Notes: generated by a model from the letters alone, not told the origin. DNA of 63,957 bases, filler included, from Perkinsus chesapeaki ATCC PRA-425 (GCA_013115145.1; 9 parts of 9 records of this genome joined end to end with filler, not necessarily neighbours in it), one strand, 5' to 3'. Counted from the whole stretch's first letter, positions 29,566-39,694 are shown. Translations and numbers: made by a program.

Positions 29566-29870
29566 ATAGGGGAATAGTAAAGGGGGGTTAATAATAGGGG
29601 AATAGTAAAGGAGGGTTAATAATAGGGGAATAGTAAAGGGTTAATAATAGGGGAATAGTAAAGGGGGGTTAATAATAGGGGAATAGTAAAGGAGGGTTAA
29701 TAATAGGGGAATAGTAAAGGAGGGTTAATAATAGGGGAATAGTAAAGGGGGGTTAATAATAGGGGAATAGTAAAGGAGGGTTAATAATAGGGGAATAGTA
29801 AAGAAGGGTTAATAATAGGGGAATAGTAAAGACGGGTTAATAATAGGGGAATAGTAAAGAAGGGTTAATA
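29566..29870 (+). repeat. 28-nt G-rich minisatellite (ATAGGGGAATAGTAAAGGRGGGTTAATA), about 11 copies
   Basis: Read directly; one shortened unit; runs into the contig edge. Confidence 0.95.
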
Positions 29871-30063
29871 ACCGTTTTATGTGCACTACAGCTTCACGCC
29901 TACTATAGTGGCCACCAATCTCGCGACAATTGGCCAAGTTGACGAAATGTTACCAAGTGTAAATGGTTTACAGTAAATCCCTTTGTTTGTTACATGTCTA
30001 GACGGAATCCATCTTTCACAACAAAACACTAAATACGCGGTATTCTTGTGAAACCAGGCAGCA

Positions 30064-33000
30064 GTGTCGCCGCGGATTCAGAAACAGCAGAGAGCAATAC
30101 ACATACCGCGTTTTACGCGTATATTATCCTGTATTTTACGGTGTATTGCATTTCCGGGATACACCACTCTTGAGATTGGATTCCAGTGTAGAAGTGATAG
30201 CAGCTTGAACTTGTATATTGGCAATATCACTTCGAATGGGCTGATCTTCGTATTACCTATTCCCTTGAAATGTGCTCCGCTGAAGAGAGAGATCTAGTTA
30301 GAAGAACGCTGTCCCATCTGCACTGTGGTTGTTCATCGGTATTGTCAGATACGCAGATTATACAGCATCCGGCAGAGGCCTTAAATGCATTGAGGACTTC
30401 ATTTCGACTAGAGTTCTACCGATGTAACTTAATTATTATTATCATTATTATTAGACTAGGATCAGGTATGGTAACACCCATTCGATAGCATCGGCAACAG
30501 CACGTCAAACCACCTTTTATCGTTCTGAAGCTCGGGAGAAGGTTAGGGCATATTTCAATGCTAATCATGAAGATTCTGGTAGTAGGGTAGTGGGGAAAGT
30601 GGATTGAATTTGCCGGGGAATCGTCGGCCTTGCCGTTATAAAAATCCCTCAAGGGCCATTCTAAAATTGCTCTTCTGTGATGGCTTAGCTTGAGATGTGG
30701 GGGCGGAGGGTAAAGATTTGTTCCTGGTGAACGTAGTCATAATCCAGGATGATGTAAGAGATACGCCAATCTGTACGGAAGCGAGGAAGGATAGGCTTGG
30801 CCTTCGCCGGTCTATTTCAATATCACGTTCAACTATATATTTGACAGTCGATGTTGGACTGTACCGAAGTTAACCTTAAAAATATCTTTCAGTTATATTC
30901 TGTGGTGCGGGCGCTACTGGTGCATCGGCGAAGTTCCTTCAAATGTTATGGAAAAGTCGAGGCTTCGATCAACAGGGGAATGACGATGAGAGGAAACATT
31001 TCAGAGAAGATAGGTATTAAATGGCGCGCGGGAAAATGAGGGCTTGTGCTCCTCGGGGGGCTAGCTAAATGTTGTGGTCGAAAAGTCGGTAGTGTTTCCA
31101 ATCCTGGCGGATCGGTTAAAATGAAATTTAGTATCCTCGGTTCCGTTGGGTGCTTCCGATGCGACTAGTGGGAGTGCTATTTAATGGGCGCGTGACTTTT
31201 ATCAGGTGGGGTGGGTGTGAATGTACACTATGTGGAGTTCGGTTGAAGAATGAGTCCGTTTATCGATCCCACGTTAAAACTGTTATGCATTTGGAGAAGT
31301 TGAATGATGATGATAAAGAAAAAAAGAATAATAAAATAACCAGAAGAAGAGCGGTAAGAAGCTGACAGGCTACCACAGTCCTAGTAGTATAACAAATCCC
31401 TGCCTTTGAAGTCAAGAGGTCACCTACTCTATCAGTTGGTATTCAGGGGCTCCTTCAGCAACCCCAAGTATCACCTTTCTTTTCCTATTAGTCTCATATT
31501 ACCATTGTTATTGATATAACTCATATCTGGGTTTCTGTCGGAAAATAATGTTTCTGGAGTAAAGAGGAACATCGTATGCATTCGTATTAGCAAAGCTCGG
31601 CGATTCTCTTTCATCTTCCCCTGTTAATCTGCCCAGGGTAGTGGTAAAGCGACGAGGCCTGGGCTATCCAACAACCGTTCAAGCAGTGCACTACTATCGG
31701 TAGCTGGGCACTTCGATGTTGGTCCAGCACGGGCAATAGTGCATACCCTCTACAGTGTTAACTTGCCGTATTACCTGACGACTATCTATCTTCATGATGG
31801 GTTTAGGTATTGGTGTTGGACCCAGTAAATCATCACAGCTCCACTTTACCATTTCGCGAGATAATCAAACAGTTTCCAATAGTAAAGGGAGGATCAGCGT
31901 CAGGTAGGATTAGACAAGAAGCTGTGATTCGATGATCATATCCCCCTCGGCTTCTGAGTAAATATTGTTATACGGCTGGAGGAATACAGAGCAAATAGTA
32001 CGACAAAGCTTAACGGTACAGCTACGCTTTGGTGAACTGCTGTTGGACTGTGAAAAGTGTGCTTCGAGGGAAATGAATCTTCACTAGGTTTACCGTTTGT
32101 GGTTTATGAATGGGCGTTAGGGTCCATTTAATAACGTGACTAATACACATAGGAAACATCTTGTATTATAGTGCATTGTGAATGGTAATATATTATAACA
32201 AGTTTGCACATAAGAGATATATTAATAAATGTGATGGTTCGGAGTGCATTTCATTCTCAGTTGCTGGTTCATCATACAACATATCTAATAATGTGGATGG
32301 CAGTATCAATAATATATTTGAAACTGAGCTAGTGGTAAGTGATGGGATTGATTGCTTATTTGGAAAATAGTATTGTCAACAAAAATTATGAAATAAACCG
32401 GTCCACAAAATTATATCACAGACGGTGTTTCAGCGGTAGTTCATCCGATACAAGGAGTCTAACGTTTATTATATATTATTTCATTTTTTTCGTTCTTTTC
32501 AAAGCGTTTATTATCATTGGTTATGATTATATGATCATGATATTATTAAATGATCATAATATTATTATATATATAAATATTGATCTCCCAAATAATCGAA
32601 CCGGATGACGAAAGTGTCATGGTTTTACAAAATCCGTTCTCAATTGTTATCATTTCGCTATGCCCCAAGTTTCGTATTATTAATCGTAAAATCGGGAAAG
32701 TTATAACAGAAGAACTAGTTTGCCTAATGGTTTGGTTAACACTGTACTGTAACAGTATTACTTTGATTCTCGAGCTCCCTGCAGCTTGGTCCCTGCAGTA
32801 GCTAGTTCGTTATAACACTTACATGTATATCTGTTTAATTGATTATAATGCATTCATGTTGGAACGCTACACAGTGTGAACCAAACCGTTATGCGAATTC
32901 GATGACGTAACTTGTCCTATTTTCGATATACGATATAATATAATTGTTACGGTGGATATGATTACACGAAGCCTCGTCTCCAAGTAGCTTATCTAGCTGC

Positions 33001-36000
33001 TGCTGCTGCTGCTCTTCATTGTTGTATGATAACAACTTGTCTGGAGTGACTGTGTAGCATATGGGGATTCGTATGCCACTTTAGTTCTTAACACTGTATC
33101 TATGTCAATACTAGCTCACGAGAACGCACCACAGTTACTGCCAAACATACTATTAGGAGGCTACTAATCATTCGCTTTATTGCGCCATTTTAAATTTTAC
33201 CTACCTCTGCCATCATGGAGGGTGTCATACCCGCTCACCACTGGCGACTTGGTCGTAATATGTGACGCTCGTTTGGTAATTCTTTATCGTATTCATTTCT
33301 GTCAGGAGCTACCATTGAATCATAACACTGGAACAGCTGATATCGGTGCATTGGAAGATGTTCTTAAGGAAGTAAGCGGAGCGAAGCGATTCATGTTTCA
33401 CATTTTTGTTTCGTAGATCGCTCATTTCAACGAGAGTACAGCCACGGATACTACAGCGGTTCCAATTGTAGTTCTGTCAGCTTGCAGTAACGTAACTGGG
33501 GCCATGCTGGATGTAAGCGGACAGCTAGAGGTGTCAGAAAATAGCAGGGGCGCTTTGTCAGATACCTACGGTGTCTACACTCATTCATTCTTATCATGGG
33601 TTGGCTTGCTGGGACTTGGCAGCAGCAAGCAGTAAAATAAAGGCAAGTTGACGGGCGGAGCGGAGCGTTTCATGAACACCGTTTTCAGGTTGACATGAAT
33701 CCTGTATCACACCCACAAGGATATATAGACTTTGCCTTTGTGTCACCACATAAGCTCCTCGGTGGTCCCGGCAGTAGTGGGATACTTTTGTGCAAGAAAC
33801 GTCATCAAACGAACGCTATACCGGCGGTTTGTGGCGGAGGAGTGGTCTTCTATGTCAGCCCAGTGTCACATAGTTATATACAAAATCATGAAGAAAGGGA
33901 AGAAGCAGGTGGGGGTTAGTTCACTTGGGATGAAACGGTTTATGATAGCTCGGAACAATTTATGGGAATGAATTTTTTGTGTGTAATCATGGTTGTTTAT
34001 AGTTAGTCCTTAAAAGACAGTAGAATTGCAAGTGATTAAATTATGTGTTGCTCGAGTGTGGCCTATGAGGTAGTGCCATAGGATTTAGGAGCATCTTTCA
34101 AACTTTGAGATTAAAAGCGTGCGCCGATTGTGCATGCTGACGCACTACACAGATAAATCTATGACGATCTGATAAAGGTCATTTTTAGTGATGCTAAATA
34201 CGCGTTTATTGTTTAAGGACTCCCATACCACACTTTGCACAATTAACCGAACTTTGTTGTAAGGTACTCCGGATATCCTCGGATGCATCAGAGCTGGAGC
34301 TGTTTACCATCTCCATAGTATGTTGGATCATGATATGATTGCTGAGAATGAGAGAAGGATGGCTACACAGTTGGTGGAGAGGTTATCAAAATGCAGCAAG
34401 ATTCATATACTCGGGCCAAAGGTGGGGATGAGGTTCCATCGCTGTTGCTATTGGCGTGTTTGGATCGGCTGGGTTAGGATCGATCGCTGGCGAGAAAGCT
34501 AATCATTGTTGAAATGTCCGCTCCATCCGCAAGTGTGAATGTGGTCATCTATCCGTACTTGAATGCGTAGAATGAAAATAGGCGATAGTACACGCTTGGT
34601 TGTAGAAGTATACGATGCCAAAGCAATATTGTGTGTTCGGCACGGTTGTTAGATATTATTTCCCTTTATAAATTAAGAAGTTACTTATATATTATTGACC
34701 TTCATTTCAGGACAGGAGTCACTGCGCCAGTATAGTGTCATTCAACATCCTCTATAATGAAGATGATACCACGAAGAAAGGACTGTAAGCAGTTGCAAAG
34801 GGCTTCCGACTTGGGGTTCCGGCGATACTTATGCCATTCGAGCCGGAGAATTACACTGCCACTTAAAGTTGGTGGAATTATCATCCAAGTAGCAAATGTT
34901 CTGATATATGACGTATAGGGCAAATGCCACTGCAAGCGATTATTTCCCTTTAACATTGGGAGCTAAATGAAGTTATTAAATAGGGAAAGAAATTTCTGGA
35001 TTTTCTCGCGTCATAACTCACTCTCAAGAATCGTCTTGCAAGTATCTGTGAGCTGCTTTCTCCAATGGTTGCATAATAAAATAATCATCATCATTCAGAT
35101 ACCTTCATTACAACTTCGTTGGTGCCCTGTTAAACGATGTCTTCGGTGTTCAAAGCAGAGGAGGTTGCGCGTGTGCCGGACCGTATGCCCACAGCCTTCT
35201 TGGAATCAATAATGACATGGCTGTCAGATTCGAGAACGCTCTAAGTAAGAAGCTGACAGCTTTACTGAAATGCGTTTAAAGGCATTTTATACATTTGGAG
35301 TGTGTCTGGAACTCGCTGTTATTATAAGTAAACTGAGCATCTCTCGATCCGTGCATCGTCATCTCCCACGTATAAGCTCCGTAGTACCGAATCAACGCAG
35401 CACTTTTGATACTGTCTGAAGTAAACTAGCTTGAGCTTACGAGATGCTGCGTGTTCAACGAGAAAAGCGGCGGCGCTGACCATAAAATAACAGAATGCAT
35501 GACGCGTGAAGTGTTGCTACTTTCCTATTGCTATTAGGAACCAGCGGATGTGAACTTATTCGTCCTGGCTTTGTAAGAGTTGGTGTACACTATTCGATGA
35601 CACAAGAGGAACTTGACGTCCTGGCCGGTAAGGAGGGATTAGAGAGCCTTGCATGTTTGGAAGTGCTCAGGTTCGATATTGTGGGTTGCCGAGAACGGCT
35701 GGAAGTTGCTTGGAGCGTACACCTTCAGCACGTCGACTGGTGAATGGCATCATCAGTTGGATAGGAGAGATAGAACGAGAAAGTGAGGGCGCTGGATGAT
35801 CTGTGGGGAAAAAATCATGGAAAAATGAGTGTAGCTGAAATAACTCGAGTTCTTGGGGTCTTCTTTCTAACCTTAATCGCGAGGCTCCTAGAGTAATGGT
35901 CATTCAACAAGCCCGAATGAGCTAGGTTTCGTACGTAACCACCTGCGCGAGTGTATGACGGTTTTGAAACCGTCTTGAAACAGTCAATTGCGCTTCTCTT

Positions 36001-38393
36001 TAGGTGGTTGTCAAGCGAACTCGGTTGGTCTCGAGTGTTGGGCAGCAGCAATGACATCGATATTGGCACCCCATCTGTTGAAGGAAATACCGATGATATC
36101 GATAGTCTTATTAAGAAAGCCGATCATATTGTAGAGGAAGCATATTCAGCGGGACAGGTGAGACTTTCCGAGGTGGTTAGAAGCATCTTACCTCCTGACG
36201 AGTCGGAGAATTACGCATGACTACTTGTCTATATGATTGGTCTGGTATGAAAGCATTAATTTCTGTGTCATCATTAGTATTCTTTCTTGCATGTATATGA
36301 CTAATATGTGGTTGCTATATCTTCTTGATGATACGCCAGATCAATTCCCATCCACTCTGTGCCCACTTTTGACTAGTTCACATGCCGTAGGTCTCATGTC
36401 GGATGCAGCGCAATCTTTAATATTAAGCACAGTAATTTCCGGAAGCGTCCCATGTGATGGACGCTAACTCCGCGCCCGACGTCGCCATTTGTTACTAGCG
36501 TAACACAAGAATTGAACTTGAGCCAAGATGGCTACATTAATCTCTCCTCTCTACTTCATGACTAAGTCTCGAGCGCTGCACGTGTGCAACGCGCTCTAAG
36601 ACCGAAATGTCATACTCGCCCAAGGGATCGATAATGTGAAGATCTCTCACACCATCGTCCACTATACGATGGTTAGCTATTTCCGGGCAGTATCGCGGGG
36701 GCTGTAGGCCAGAAAAAGAAGGCTCGATGAAATTTTTGTGTTGTTTCGTCGATGCTGTTGCTCAGGTTCCCTTCTCCGCCGTGAAGTGTCCGCTCCTTGA
36801 TTCCGATTTAGCGGACTTGGTATGGTTTGCTTTACCGACCGACTGCAAGTGGTCTTTGGAGGGTGCGACCTCTTCCTCACCAGTTCCTAAAATCTGTACT
36901 GATCCCACTGTTCCTTTATTCAAGCCCAGTAAGGGTGATGATACCATGGTGAAGAGGTAAGCGACATACCCTATACCGGCTTTGTGATTAGCTTCGGTAA
37001 CGCAGGACTAACTGCATTCTGCAACGGCGTTAACTGTGCGTTCCGAATTTTAATAGATTTTATGGTGTCATCAGCATTTTCACTGCGCAGTTGCCTTCCC
37101 GCTATTGAAAATATGGGCTACCAGCAACCGACGATAACGTTGTGTCGTCCTCATAGGAATAGTTTGTTAGCTCACAACTTTTCGTGAATATCATATTAAA
37201 AAATCGCCGTAAATTGCACCCCGCCTTTCAGAGCTACTGAGAGCATATTCAATGCATCTATTTGGTCAATGAGCGAAGAGGAGCGGAAATCCATTATGGA
37301 TTCACACAAGGCTGGGAATGGCGGACAAGAACGGTGGTCTAAAAAACGTGAAGTAAGTCTGCTGTATTCGCTCAGTTATTCATGGTCAGGATCATCGTTC
37401 ATGTTCTGTTCGCTTAAAAGTTGTTTTTCTCAGGCATCGACTGAGCTTGTCGCCCCCCACGTTAAGCTTCATCCAAGCGGGTTCCCACAAGTCTCCATCA
37501 CCCCCGTGGTGTCCAAGAAGCTTCGCTTACTCATCGGAACTGCTGTACGTGATTTCCAAATGATCAACGAGGGAGATAAGATCCTTGTCGGTCTGTCTGG
37601 TGGCAAAGACAGCCTTACAATGCTCCACCTTTTGCTGGCGTTAAAAAAGCGTTCTCCAGTGAAGTTTAAGATCGGAGCTGCTACCGTTGATCCTCAAACG
37701 CCGGAGTACAATCCAGAACCTCTGAAGAGGTATATGGAGGCTTTGGGTGTGGAGTATCACTTCTTATCGAAGCCTTTGATTGAGATGGCGAAGAACTCCC
37801 TTGACCCTAAAAAGCCTAGTTTATGCAGCTTCTGTGCTAGAATGAAGCGTGGTATGCTTTATTCGTGTATGAGGGAGTTTGGCTATACTTCACTGGCACT
37901 CGGGCAGCACTTGGATGACCTCGCTGAAAGCTTTGTGATGAGCGCCTTCCACAACGGCACCTTACGAACAATGAAAGCAAATTACTATGTGCAGCAGGGT
38001 GACTTGAGAGTTATTCGACCACTGGTTTACTGTAGAGAAAAGCAACTCGCTGAATTCGCTGCTGAGAACCGATTGCCTGTTATTTCTGATAACTGCCCGG
38101 CGTGCTTTGCCGCACCGAAGGAGAGACATAGAATTAAAGTCCTTCTCAGCGAGCAGGAGTTCGACTATCCTAGGCTGTTTAATAGCTTGTTGAGTACGAT
38201 GAAACCGCTGATGGCTATTAAAAACGCTGGAAAAGCAAGCGATATCGCCAAGGGGAAGATCGCGGCTGATGAGATAAAGTTGGTGAAATGCAATACTTCA
38301 GATGAAGACACCGACCAGGCTGCCGAGGAATGCATGATGTCGTGCAATGTGGAGGGAGCGTGCTGCGCTATGCCATCGAAAACGACCAAGTGA
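30064..38393 (+). CDS. ttcA: Fusion gene: class V PLP cysteine-desulfurase-like domain (with inserted C2H2 finger) plus TtcA-type PP-loop tRNA thiotransferase; many exons; 5' start uncertain
   Basis: Exons give YADYTASGR, YGNTH, VIFCGAGATGA, CTLC...H...H, DPVNHHSSTLPFRE, SACSNVTG, VSPHKLLGGPG, SRGGCACAGPY, RPGFVR, LVWFALP, then in frame (GT-AG 36958-37231) SGGKDS, CSFCARMKRG, GQHLDD, IRPL, CPAC. Confidence 0.88.
36517..36538 (-). other. Spliced-leader relic (AATGTAGCCATCTTGGCTCAAG) heading a degraded retrocopy inside an intron
   Basis: Last 19 nt identical to the Perkinsus 22-nt SL (ACCGTAGCCATCTTGGCTCAAG); followed by TTCAA (no GT donor), a 28-nt UTR and ATG at 36488. Confidence 0.85.
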
Positions 38394-38598
38394 CTTAGAC
38401 TTTTACCACTACTGTTAATAGTTACTGATCATAACGTATTATTGTATCTATTGTGTTGTCAAGAAGTATCGAAAACAAGTTTCCCAGGGTCACTAGGCAG
38501 ACAGGCCCGAACACGATTGCGATGAAAAAAGTCAAGGAAAGACGTTCGCGAAGTTTGGTCGTCCTGGTTTTCGCGCAGAGAGCCAGTGAGGCGGTGTA

Positions 38599-38889
38599 GT
38601 GTCATTTTCTAGCAATCCACGGTTCATGCGAAAGTTTAATTTGGAATCGAATAAGGAGGCACTAATATGGATTATAATAAAAGATGCATGTTTGCTTCAG
38701 TACCGTAGGATTTCAGAGTTGGAACACGCACTGTCGGCAACTGAACTGGAAGTGTCGGTGCTTCTTGGCGATAAAGGGCAACTCAAGAACGACCTGGAAG
38801 AATGTCGCGAACGAGTTAAGGAATTGGTAAGGCTGGTGAGGATCGTCGAGCATTATGAATTGTTCGGTTCAGGAAGAGAAATTGAATAA
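38599..38889 (+). CDS. Hypothetical coiled-coil fragment
   Basis: RRISELEHALSATELEVSVLLGDKGQLKNDLEECRERVKEL heptad pattern. Confidence 0.25.
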   Translation: MSFSSNPRFMRKFNLESNKEALIWIIIKDACLLQYRRISELEHALSATELEVSVLLGDKGQLKNDLEECRERVKELVRLVRIVEHYELFGSGREIE

Positions 38890-39052
38890 AGTCAACTCCA
38901 ACCCCAGTGGCAAACCTCCCACAGCAAGCTCCGAGACCGAACATGTATTATACATCGTTTATAATTAACTATGACTGTCTACATTTCTAGTCAAAGCTCC
39001 GTTGCAGGTTGACAGTGGCAGCTCAAAAAAATTCACCATTCCGGAGTTCTTC

Positions 39053-39352
39053 TCTGAGGAAGCGTGTTCCACTCCGGAACCGGCTAGGAAGGCACGTATA
39101 GCCGCGGCTGGTTCGGAAGAAGCGTGTTCCACTCCGGAACCGGCCAAGAAGGCACGTAAAGCTGCGGCTGGTTCTGAAGAAGCGTGTACCACTCCGAAAC
39201 CGGCTAAGAAGGCACGTAAAGCTGCGGCTGGTTCTGAAGAAGCGTGTACCACTCCGAAACCGGCTAAGAAGGCACGTAAAGCTGCGGCCGGTTCTGAAGA
39301 AGCGTGTACCACTCCGAATCCGGCTAAGAAGCCACGTAAAGCTGCGGCCGAT
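39053..39352 (+). repeat. 60-nt coding-type tandem repeat x5 (SEEACTTPKPAKKARKAAAG)
   Basis: Five consecutive 60-nt units in ORF 39002-39508. Confidence 0.95.
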
Positions 39353-39394
39353 TCCTCGAAACGGCCTCGGTCGACCAGGCCAATAGAGGTAACG

Positions 39395-39694
39395 ACCCTA
39401 CCCGGAACAGAAGCACTTAGTCGACGTTGTAACCCAGTGTTGCCACGACGCTCATCAGGGTGCAATCACCGCCTGTCGCAACTGTTTACCCGGTGTTCGG
39501 AATGGTAATAGTACCTTAGTAGACTTTATTATTCGACTGATTTCCATTTATTTTAGTGCGCTGTTATTTTCACCTGGTGAAGAACATGAAAGACGACAAG
39601 AAAAAGTTCGGAGACGCAGATTGTTGGTCCCCTCCCTTTCCAGACCCACTACTAGATGAAACACGACGCTGGGATGGCATGAGGTATACGAGTA
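39395..39694 (+). mobile_element. MULE/Mutator-like transposase fragment with an intron
   Basis: PYPEQKHLVDVVTQCCHDAHQGAITACRNCLPGVRN + GT-AG intron (about 39506-39555) + VRCYFHLVKN (D...CxxH signature). Confidence 0.6.

Follow-up and report, generated by a model that had tools for sequence, protein, structure and literature searches.

An intron-rich Perkinsus chesapeaki locus joining a SufS/CsdA-like PLP domain to a TtcA-type domain: a candidate desulfurase-fed tRNA thiolase

Can a eukaryotic protein carry, on a single chain, both the module that mobilises sulfur and the module that inserts it into tRNA? The question is raised by a locus on the plus strand of a 63,957-nucleotide stretch of Perkinsus chesapeaki ATCC PRA-425 DNA (GCA_013115145.1; nine records joined end to end with filler; hereafter, the window), in which exons for a class V pyridoxal 5'-phosphate (PLP) domain are followed by exons for a PP-loop domain of the TtcA type. 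The product of TtcA, 2-thiocytidine at tRNA position 32 (s2C32), was long held to be confined to bacteria and archaea. We consider it likely that the locus encodes a four-part product, comprising a PLP domain with an inserted zinc finger, an extension, a tether and a TtcA domain, in which the desulfurase-like domain would feed an s2C32-making TtcA. The piece analysed, 29566-39694, is eukaryotic DNA with many short open stretches on the plus strand and a G+C content of 31-54% per 500 bases, mostly 38-48%. Searches were run exon by exon, and exons were joined solely for counts of length, stops and motif positions.

Gene structure and the junction between the modules

The gene comprises at least 18 exons between 30302 and 38393, the joined frame of which (3,048 nt) contains no internal stop and ends in a stop codon, yielding a product of at least 1,015 amino acids (aa) that is incomplete at the N-terminus. 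The 17 introns (16 GT-AG and one GC-AG) range from 42 to 1,424 nt; exon borders were set at canonical splice sites picked to fit orthologues. A family profile of 956 positions, built from 44 full-length fusion proteins, is colinear from position 55 to position 952 with 16 ordered, stop-free stretches of the plus strand, with E-values for individual exons as low as 3e-36, 6e-26 and 1e-150, a match far beyond chance. Full-length fusions of 970-1,078 aa were also colinear with 30338-38390 in tblastn searches, including the transcript-derived proteins P0243 (MMETSP), P0242 (TSA), P0244 (Digyalum) and P0148 (Diplonema). The motifs quoted in the initial annotation were all recovered on the plus strand, SPHK in 33689-33908, RGGCACAGPY in 35099-35244, and SGGKDS, CSFC and CPAC in 37434-38393. 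Its list of exons was too short and has been extended, for example by a 74-nt mini-exon and a zinc-finger exon. The features of the locus are:

30052-30249, plus strand: candidate 5' coding stretch in frame 0 (...LNLYIGN...), without ATG, possibly linked to 30302 through a 52-nt GT..AG intron; weak likeness to the orthologue N-terminal LRxxxIG; uncertain
30302-30423, plus strand: exon in which the PLP domain begins (..YADYTASGRGL..VLP); profile positions 55-81, E 8.5e-10; tblastn
30466-30578, plus strand: exon YGNTHS...ARQTT...REAR, preceded by a 42-nt intron; profile 82-117, E 8.5e-14; splice sites
30893-31013, plus strand: exon ..IFCGAGATGA..; profile 118-154, E 2.6e-6
31206-31353, plus strand: exon with a C2H2 zinc finger, C-x2-C-x12-H-x5-H; Pfam zf-met; profile 152-196, E 2.3e-12
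31807-31881, plus strand: exon with NHHSS, the equivalent of SufS HH(A)N, with an alternative 3' end at 31903; profile; alignment to SufS HHAN
33306-33371, plus strand: short exon of 66 nt; matches to Perkinsus and dinoflagellate orthologues; splice sites
33417-33512, plus strand: exon ..VVLSACSNVTG..; profile 247-272; tblastn
33562-33642, plus strand: exon with the WD aspartate (the invariant Asp), followed by the GC-AG intron; profile, splice sites
33689-33908, plus strand: exon with the putative PLP-binding lysine (FVSPHKLLGGPG); Aminotran_5, E 7e-6; profile, E 2.9e-36; Lys on the SufS PLP Lys
34264-34421, plus strand: exon (GTPDILGCIRAG...); profile 370-422, E 7e-17
34711-34784, plus strand: mini-exon of 74 nt (..IVSFNI..); weak profile match at 425-440; phases fit both neighbours; 69-83% identity to Perkinsus proteins
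35099-35244, plus strand: exon with the candidate persulfide loop RGGCACAGPY; profile, E 5.7e-26; alignment to SufS
35538-35627, plus strand: exon ..RPGFVRVGVHY..; tblastn, profile
35671-35782, plus strand: exon ..GWKLL..TGEWHH.., C-terminal extension of the PLP module; tblastn, profile
36004-36157, plus strand: exon WLSSELGW...SAGQ, predicted fusion-specific structured extension; kept in the related contig L001 to the same ...SAGQ/GT donor; R-x-W invariant
36766-36956, plus strand: exon with LVWFALPTD, where the structured part of the N-terminal module is predicted to end and the flexible tether to begin; 80% nucleotide identity in L001
36957-37231, plus strand: 275-nt intron between the modules, GTAAGC...TTTCAG; splice sites; sequence not kept in L001, which has a shorter intron in the same place
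37232-37352, plus strand: tether exon (ATESIFNASIWSMSEEERK...); counterparts in L001 and P0255
37353-37433, plus strand: in-frame intron of 81 nt, GTAAGT...TCTCAG; splice sites; the L001 counterpart has a stop and shifts the frame
37434-38393, plus strand: exon with the TtcA-type PP-loop domain (SGGKDS, CSFC, CPAC), acidic Cys-rich tail and stop; PP-loop, E 9e-17; TtcA, E 3e-67; profile, E 1.4e-150

Very short introns of 42-49 nt (30424-30465, 33372-33416, 33513-33561, 33643-33688 and 35628-35670) stand beside long ones in this gene, and the single GC-AG intron, 33643-33688, has the consensus AAG/GCAAGT.

At the junction between the modules, the upstream exon ends in ...ATGGTGAAGAG at 36956 with the donor GAG/GTAAGC, the acceptor CCTTTCAG closes the intron at 37231, and 37232 is the first base of the next exon. 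The canonical, in-frame splice initially proposed at ...MVKR/ATESIF... is thus retained, and the reading stays in frame because the split codon AG+A encodes R; its coordinates are corrected, in that the intron occupies 36957-37231 and lies one base earlier than noted. An independent view of this junction comes from L001, a 3.2-kb genomic contig from a related organism (Logan SRR12548988), with 91% protein identity to the window in TtcA and about 78-80% DNA identity in the exons. This contig keeps exons 36004-36157, 36766-36956 and 37232-37352 together with the TtcA exon and retains the donor after ...SAGQ; the introns have diverged. Its tether exon reads ...TESIFNSSIWSKSEEERK..., with Lys in place of the window Met at 37269 and not a single Met across the exon, and the intron that follows carries a stop and changes the frame. 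For these reasons TtcA is not a separate open reading frame (ORF) in the L001 species, and the Met at 37269 is, judging from this comparison, not a conserved start. The 374-aa ORF 37269-38393 conceals the intron 37353-37433 and is visible in the window because that intron happens to be in frame. Furthermore, TtcA-bearing eukaryotic proteins, compared with the window by tblastn, also match the PLP exons 34263-34412, 35097-35249 and 35510-35842 and the linker exon 36763-36897, exon 36766-36956 is present in TtcA-bearing transcripts or proteins of other species, and the P. chesapeaki protein P0255 reads TESILNARIWS at the tether exon.

The open spliced frame, the profile colinearity and L001 together bear out the earlier proposal of one eukaryotic gene uniting a class V PLP domain with a TtcA-type domain, and a single fused gene is, in our assessment, very probable. 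The competing view, that a PLP enzyme gene and a neighbouring TtcA gene starting from Met 37269 have been joined on paper or that the locus is a decaying pseudogene, could invoke the ATG at 37269, which opens the 374-aa ORF, and the public Perkinsus models, which cover the PLP part only. Several further observations weigh against a single intact gene: there is no ATG in any plus-strand frame across 30002-30250, so that the long model has no initiator Met found, and the 5' exon and start codon may have escaped us because a satellite lies at the edge of the piece; two small sequencing runs (5 million letters each, guessed to be RNA) gave only chance matches of 18-32 bases to the locus; and among relatives some transcript ORFs hold the PLP domain only (P0249, P0252) or the tether and TtcA only (P0006, P0008, P0019), which leaves room for separate products. 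The two-gene or pseudogene view nevertheless appears highly improbable: it must contend with the Lys, the Met-free exon and the frame-breaking intron of L001, with a linker exon conserved in TtcA-bearing proteins of many species, with a frame that stays free of stops over 18 exons with every splice site canonical, and with the extension of P0255 from the PLP domain into the tether exon. At the 5' end of the gene, no clear counterpart of the conserved orthologue N-terminus M-x-R-Y was found.

In several protist transcriptomes, the same gene or cluster is represented by full fusions, by PLP-only ORFs and by ORFs with the tether and TtcA only (P0249 and P0252 compared with P0150 and P0148; P0006, P0008 and P0019 compared with P0243, P0242 and P0244). 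The partial ORFs may be truncated contigs or real alternative isoforms.

Domains and conserved catalytic positions

Alignment and profile matches identify the N-terminal module as a class V PLP domain of SufS/CsdA-like (type II-like) character. Aminotran_5 (PF00266) matches exon 33689-33908 on its own (E 7e-6) and the orthologues at E 1e-25 to 1e-44, and the closest solved relatives of the orthologue P0127 are SufS, CsdB and CsdA (E 2.5e-17 and weaker). The lysine of the S-x-H-K motif (STHK in P0127, SPHK in the window) aligns with the PLP lysine of SufS, NHHSS aligns with SufS HHAN, and the second Cys of RGGCACAGP in P0127, a motif that is identical in the window, aligns with the catalytic Cys of RAGHHCAQP in 8d8s, 5b7s and 6mri. 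The HH pair, the Asp, S-x-HK and R-x-G-C-x-C with both Cys are invariant in 84 aligned fusions, and the pattern RxGCxC(A/S)GP is matched by 91 of the 101 fusions. The alignment to SufS and this invariance agree with the complete class V PLP domain, with an SPHK lysine and a Cys-bearing RGGCACA loop, that was recognised in the initial annotation, and they make the second Cys of RGGCACAGPY a candidate catalytic Cys.

The domain resembles SufS, CsdA and CsdB in fold, in its PLP Lys, HH pair and Asp, and in where the catalytic Cys lies within an R-x-G-x-x-C loop. It differs from them in having GGCAC in place of GHHC, an inserted zinc finger and some 150 additional residues as a C-terminal extension, and it scores far under the family cut-offs. 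Among NCBIfam models, that of the SufS family, TIGR01979, fits best, at 99-135 bits on the orthologues against a cut-off of 475, whereas the IscS models reach 20-24 bits (E about 1e-5) on P0216 and do not match P0127; the domain therefore appears to belong to a distinct SufS-like subfamily and not to IscS. A model of the selenocysteine lyase SclA also matches the PLP domain at E 1e-11 to 1e-16.

The C-terminal extension is common to stand-alone bacterial relatives of the module, which are numerous (550-580 aa, 40-42% identity), are annotated as class V-fold PLP enzymes and form a large family that seems to be uncharacterised. Three such homologues, L002, L003 and L004, of 547-578 aa, are 40-42% identical over the full length, extension included, and have unrelated neighbours.

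The C-terminal module falls, by the same kind of comparison, among the bacterial-type TtcA PP-loop domains and not with Ncs6/CTU1. The largest ORF (37269-38393) matches Pfam PP-loop PF01171 at E 9e-17 and, by the widest margin, NCBIfam TtcA NF007972 (E 2.9e-67; 227 bits, under the equivalog cut-off of 272); the other models yield 66 bits for TilS-N, 48.2 bits for TtuA (E 8e-13) and 39.7 bits for NcsA (E 3e-10, cut-off 500). SGGKDS, CxxC and CPxC are invariant in the 84 fusions, and bona fide gammaproteobacterial TtcAs share 55-60% identity with the domain along its full length. CSFC and CPAC align with the cluster cysteines of TtuA PH0300, the closest solved structure (E 2e-12). In Escherichia coli TtcA, an essential [4Fe-4S] cluster is held by Cys122, Cys125 and Cys222, that is, by the central CxxC and a later Cys (PMC4081106), to which the CSFC and CPAC cysteines of the window correspond. 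The N- and C-terminal CxxC...CxxC zinc fingers of Ncs6/CTU1, NcsA and TtuA, which belong to the same PP-loop/[4Fe-4S] superfamily, are absent from the window protein, in which no CxxC pair precedes the PP-loop and the C-terminal tail, C-x3-C-x5-CC, differs from the canonical Ncs6/CTU1 finger motif. The proposal of a TtcA domain devoid of terminal zinc fingers, and not grouping with CTU1, is upheld by these comparisons. Compared with the bacterial enzymes of E. coli and Salmonella, with which it shares the PP-loop ATP site and the CxxC plus third Cys for [4Fe-4S], the window protein differs in its source of sulfur: bacterial TtcA is served by a separate type I IscS (with IscU), whereas here a type II-like PLP domain would lie on the same chain.

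Between segments of the PLP domain is inserted a zinc finger, encoded by exon 31206-31353, which matches Pfam zf-met (PF12874) at 23.3 bits against a cut-off of 21.2 (E 7.7e-5) and zf-C2H2_jaz at 19.4 bits, under the cut-off. The exon is 148 nt long, not a multiple of 3, so that skipping it breaks the frame. The finger occurs in 40 of the 101 fusions, namely in the relatives of the window, in Diplonema and in ciliates, and in none of the oomycete and animal fusions scanned.

For the region between the modules, structure and complex predictions were made on the orthologue P0243 in place of the window protein. The AlphaFold model (mean predicted local distance difference test score, pLDDT, 83; predicted template modelling score 0.70) is ordered at about 30-715, disordered at 717-764 (pLDDT <50) and ordered again in the TtcA domain, 765-1020, with a disordered tail; its first ordered region takes in the finger and some 110 residues of helical extension bearing the (nearly) invariant motifs R-x-W and WF..P. 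In this model, the 'linker' is a folded, fusion-specific extension (about 110 aa) plus a flexible tether of about 50 residues (put at about 50-80 in the window product), with window counterparts in exons 36004-36157, 36766-36956 and then 37232-37352; no family in Pfam or NCBIfam matched the linker exons. When the PLP module (40-605) of P0243 was modelled in complex with its TtcA domain (770-1040), the score was 0.00, which counts neither for nor against docking.

The window protein ends, at 38300-38390, in an acidic stretch followed by the Cys-rich tail, as is also seen at orthologue C-termini. A late-tail C-x(1-9)-C pair, present in 28 of 97 fusions and absent from all 63 of the short bacterial-type TtcAs, could be a lineage-specific metal or persulfide site.

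Spread of the fusion among eukaryotes

When the TtcA ORF was used in a word search, the matches included many eukaryotic proteins that extend far beyond it at the N-terminus. One of these, P0013, also has Aminotran_5, and among the 120 proteins listed when P0013 was searched in turn, nearly all have PF00266 together with PF01171 and most measure 750-1,050 aa. The fusion is found in Symbiodinium, Durusdinium, Cardiosporidium, Diplonema, Euglena, Stentor, Blepharisma, Guillardia and Plasmodiophora, in the oomycetes Phytophthora, Pythium, Aphanomyces, Saprolegnia, Albugo and Bremia, and among invertebrates in Trichoplax, sponges, cnidarians, echinoderms, a tunicate, molluscs, an annelid and ticks. 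Its taxonomic spread, a question posed at the outset, takes in alveolates, oomycetes, euglenozoans, a cryptophyte, ciliates and many invertebrates. Among close relatives of the window, full-length fusions derived from transcripts are P0243 (1,078 aa), P0242 (1,053 aa) and P0244 (976 aa). In a FastTree phylogeny of TtcA domains, which is unrooted and has a bacterial sample biased to relatives of the query, the window and the other fusions, 124 in all, come together in a single clade (support 0.976) that excludes the nearest bacterial TtcAs, and the window groups with dinoflagellate sequences. The PLP exons are 60-80% identical to P. marinus and P. chesapeaki proteins, a higher identity than to those of dinoflagellates. 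The public models of these two species (P0251, P0254 and P0255) contain PF00266 only; P0255 enters the tether exon and then ends, which suggests that the Perkinsus annotations truncate the fusion gene. Such truncation is probable, and the public models also seem to skip the zinc-finger exon. The value of the present work at this locus is a corrected gene model where public Perkinsus annotations seem to hold the PLP half only.

The fusion is not new, being present in public databases for dozens of eukaryotes and in one preprint. That preprint (bioRxiv 10.64898/2026.09.27.754811, 28 Sep 2026) gives the first report of eukaryotic s2C32, in Aplysia tRNA-Lys(UUU), and describes an 'IscS-TtcA' gene of 1,177 aa with a CsdA domain and a TtcA-like domain that is conserved in 28 mollusc species and, according to its authors, beyond; the catalytic Cys is not identified there, and the linker is called poorly conserved. 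Whether the fusion had already been described, which the initial annotation left open, is thereby answered in the affirmative. Further full-text searches found no other description of the fusion and nothing relevant on s2C in protists. Like the window, Aplysia californica LOC101861551 has a CsdA/COG0520-type PLP domain with the PLP lysine conserved and, beyond a long linker, a TtcA-like domain in which SGGKDS, CSFC and CPAC are present; the same C-x-C pair is noted as a candidate in the preprint, and the TtcA clade of the window also contains animal fusions. The window differs in coming from an alveolate and not a mollusc, in carrying a zf-met finger inside the PLP domain and in its acidic, Cys-rich C-terminal tail. 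Our analysis departs from the preprint in that the PLP part, there named IscS, fits the SufS/CsdA models far better, that the second Cys of the loop aligns with the SufS catalytic Cys, and that the linker, with its R-x-W and WF..P motifs, is predicted to be folded. Beyond the preprint, therefore, the locus adds a PLP domain that appears SufS-like and not IscS-like, a candidate catalytic Cys, and a zinc finger in some lineages.

Proposed sulfur route, alternative readings and flanking sequence

From these conserved residues we infer a route in which the PLP domain would take sulfur from L-cysteine as a persulfide on the C-x-C loop RGGCACAGPY. The tethered TtcA domain would hold a [4Fe-4S] cluster on the cysteines of CSFC and CPAC and receive the sulfur on the free iron of the cluster; it would adenylate C2 of tRNA cytidine 32 with ATP through SGGKDS, whereupon sulfur would replace the oxygen to give s2C32. 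The zinc finger belongs to a double-stranded RNA (dsRNA)-binding class and may help to hold the tRNA. To call the enzyme self-contained, as was done at first, is an overstatement because the Fe-S machinery of the cell must still supply the [4Fe-4S] cluster. The substrate, at first regarded as wholly open, is less so because Aplysia, with the same fusion, has s2C32 in tRNA-Lys(UUU): tRNA C32 is now the leading candidate, and rival targets remain. On balance, we favour, with some reserve, an s2C32 synthase fed by its own desulfurase.

Part of the evidence speaks against this reading. The PLP domain appears to be an uncharacterised subfamily that lies under the curated desulfurase score cut-offs, literature searches found no biochemical study of the fusion and no assayed member of the subfamily, the TtcA score falls short of the equivalog cut-off, and the link between gene and s2C32 in Aplysia is correlative. 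Nor was ttcA or any other sulfur-relay gene found within 6 kb of the bacterial PLP-module genes at three loci (Euzebya, Marinobacter and a Gemmatimonadetes metagenome-assembled genome), a small sample in which no bacterial precedent for pairing PLP with TtcA was seen. An alternative is a real fusion in which the PLP domain is not the sulfur source of TtcA, the sulfur coming from an NFS1/IscS-type desulfurase as in bacteria; the PLP domain could then be a selenocysteine lyase or other C-S lyase, a cluster-repair factor, or a regulatory or structural module. The PLP scores, far under every curated desulfurase cut-off, the SclA match and the stand-alone bacterial relatives, uncharacterised and without linkage to ttcA at the three loci, favour this view, and the docking score of 0.00 gives no verdict. 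We consider it unlikely, in that none of the 84 fusions departs from the PLP Lys, the HH pair, the Asp or the Cys that occupies the SufS catalytic position, the fusion is stable over several eukaryotic supergroups, for which two steps of one pathway offer the simplest explanation, and E. coli TtcA in vitro depends on a desulfurase as its source of sulfur (PMC4081106). A target other than tRNA C32, whether another position, another RNA or a uridine, seems somewhat less likely still: the sub-threshold TtcA score would allow it, and the choice of substrate could be shifted by the dsRNA-type zinc finger and the long extension that the protein has gained, but the domain is close over its whole length to bona fide gammaproteobacterial TtcAs, TtcA is by far its best family match, and s2C32 occurs in an animal that carries the same fusion.

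The preferred reading, a desulfurase-like PLP domain feeding TtcA, has a partial parallel in ThiI, the synthase of 4-thiouridine at tRNA position 8 (s4U8), a PP-loop tRNA thiolase that carries a sulfur-donating rhodanese on the same chain, a persulfide carrier loaded by IscS; in the window, the fused module would be the PLP desulfurase-like enzyme itself. SufS-type desulfurases usually act with an acceptor protein, and we know of no SufE or SufU partner for the PLP module of the fusion.

A broader scenario, which we advance tentatively and with some doubt, is that eukaryotes acquired the fusion a single time and long ago, and that it serves to make s2C32 in cytosolic tRNAs with its own sulfur supply and not through the NFS1 relay, the finger of alveolates, ciliates and euglenozoans gripping the tRNA. 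In that case s2C32 would be common across eukaryotic tRNAs and would have been missed since the classical model organisms are not among the carriers of the gene. A conserved eukaryotic enzyme with sulfur mobilisation and thiolation on one chain would explain the s2C32 reported in one mollusc, and s2C32 could be sought in alveolates (oyster parasites and coral symbionts), oomycete plant pathogens, euglenozoans, ciliates and many invertebrates.

On the 5' side of the gene, eleven copies (95% matches) of a 28-bp satellite occupy 29566-29871, with some 180-430 bp between them and the point downstream where coding sequence can first be recognised. On the 3' side, an ORF at 39002-39508, for which no Pfam match was found, contains a 60-bp tandem repeat (39053-39348; 4.9 copies, 94% matches) that encodes a 20-aa Ala/Lys/Pro-rich unit, SEEAC.TP.PAKKARKAAAG, and is also open on the opposite strand. 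Just downstream of the TtcA stop, a 96-aa ORF at 38599-38889 has weak Pfam matches of the coiled-coil type, all under cut-off, and may be an exon of the next gene.

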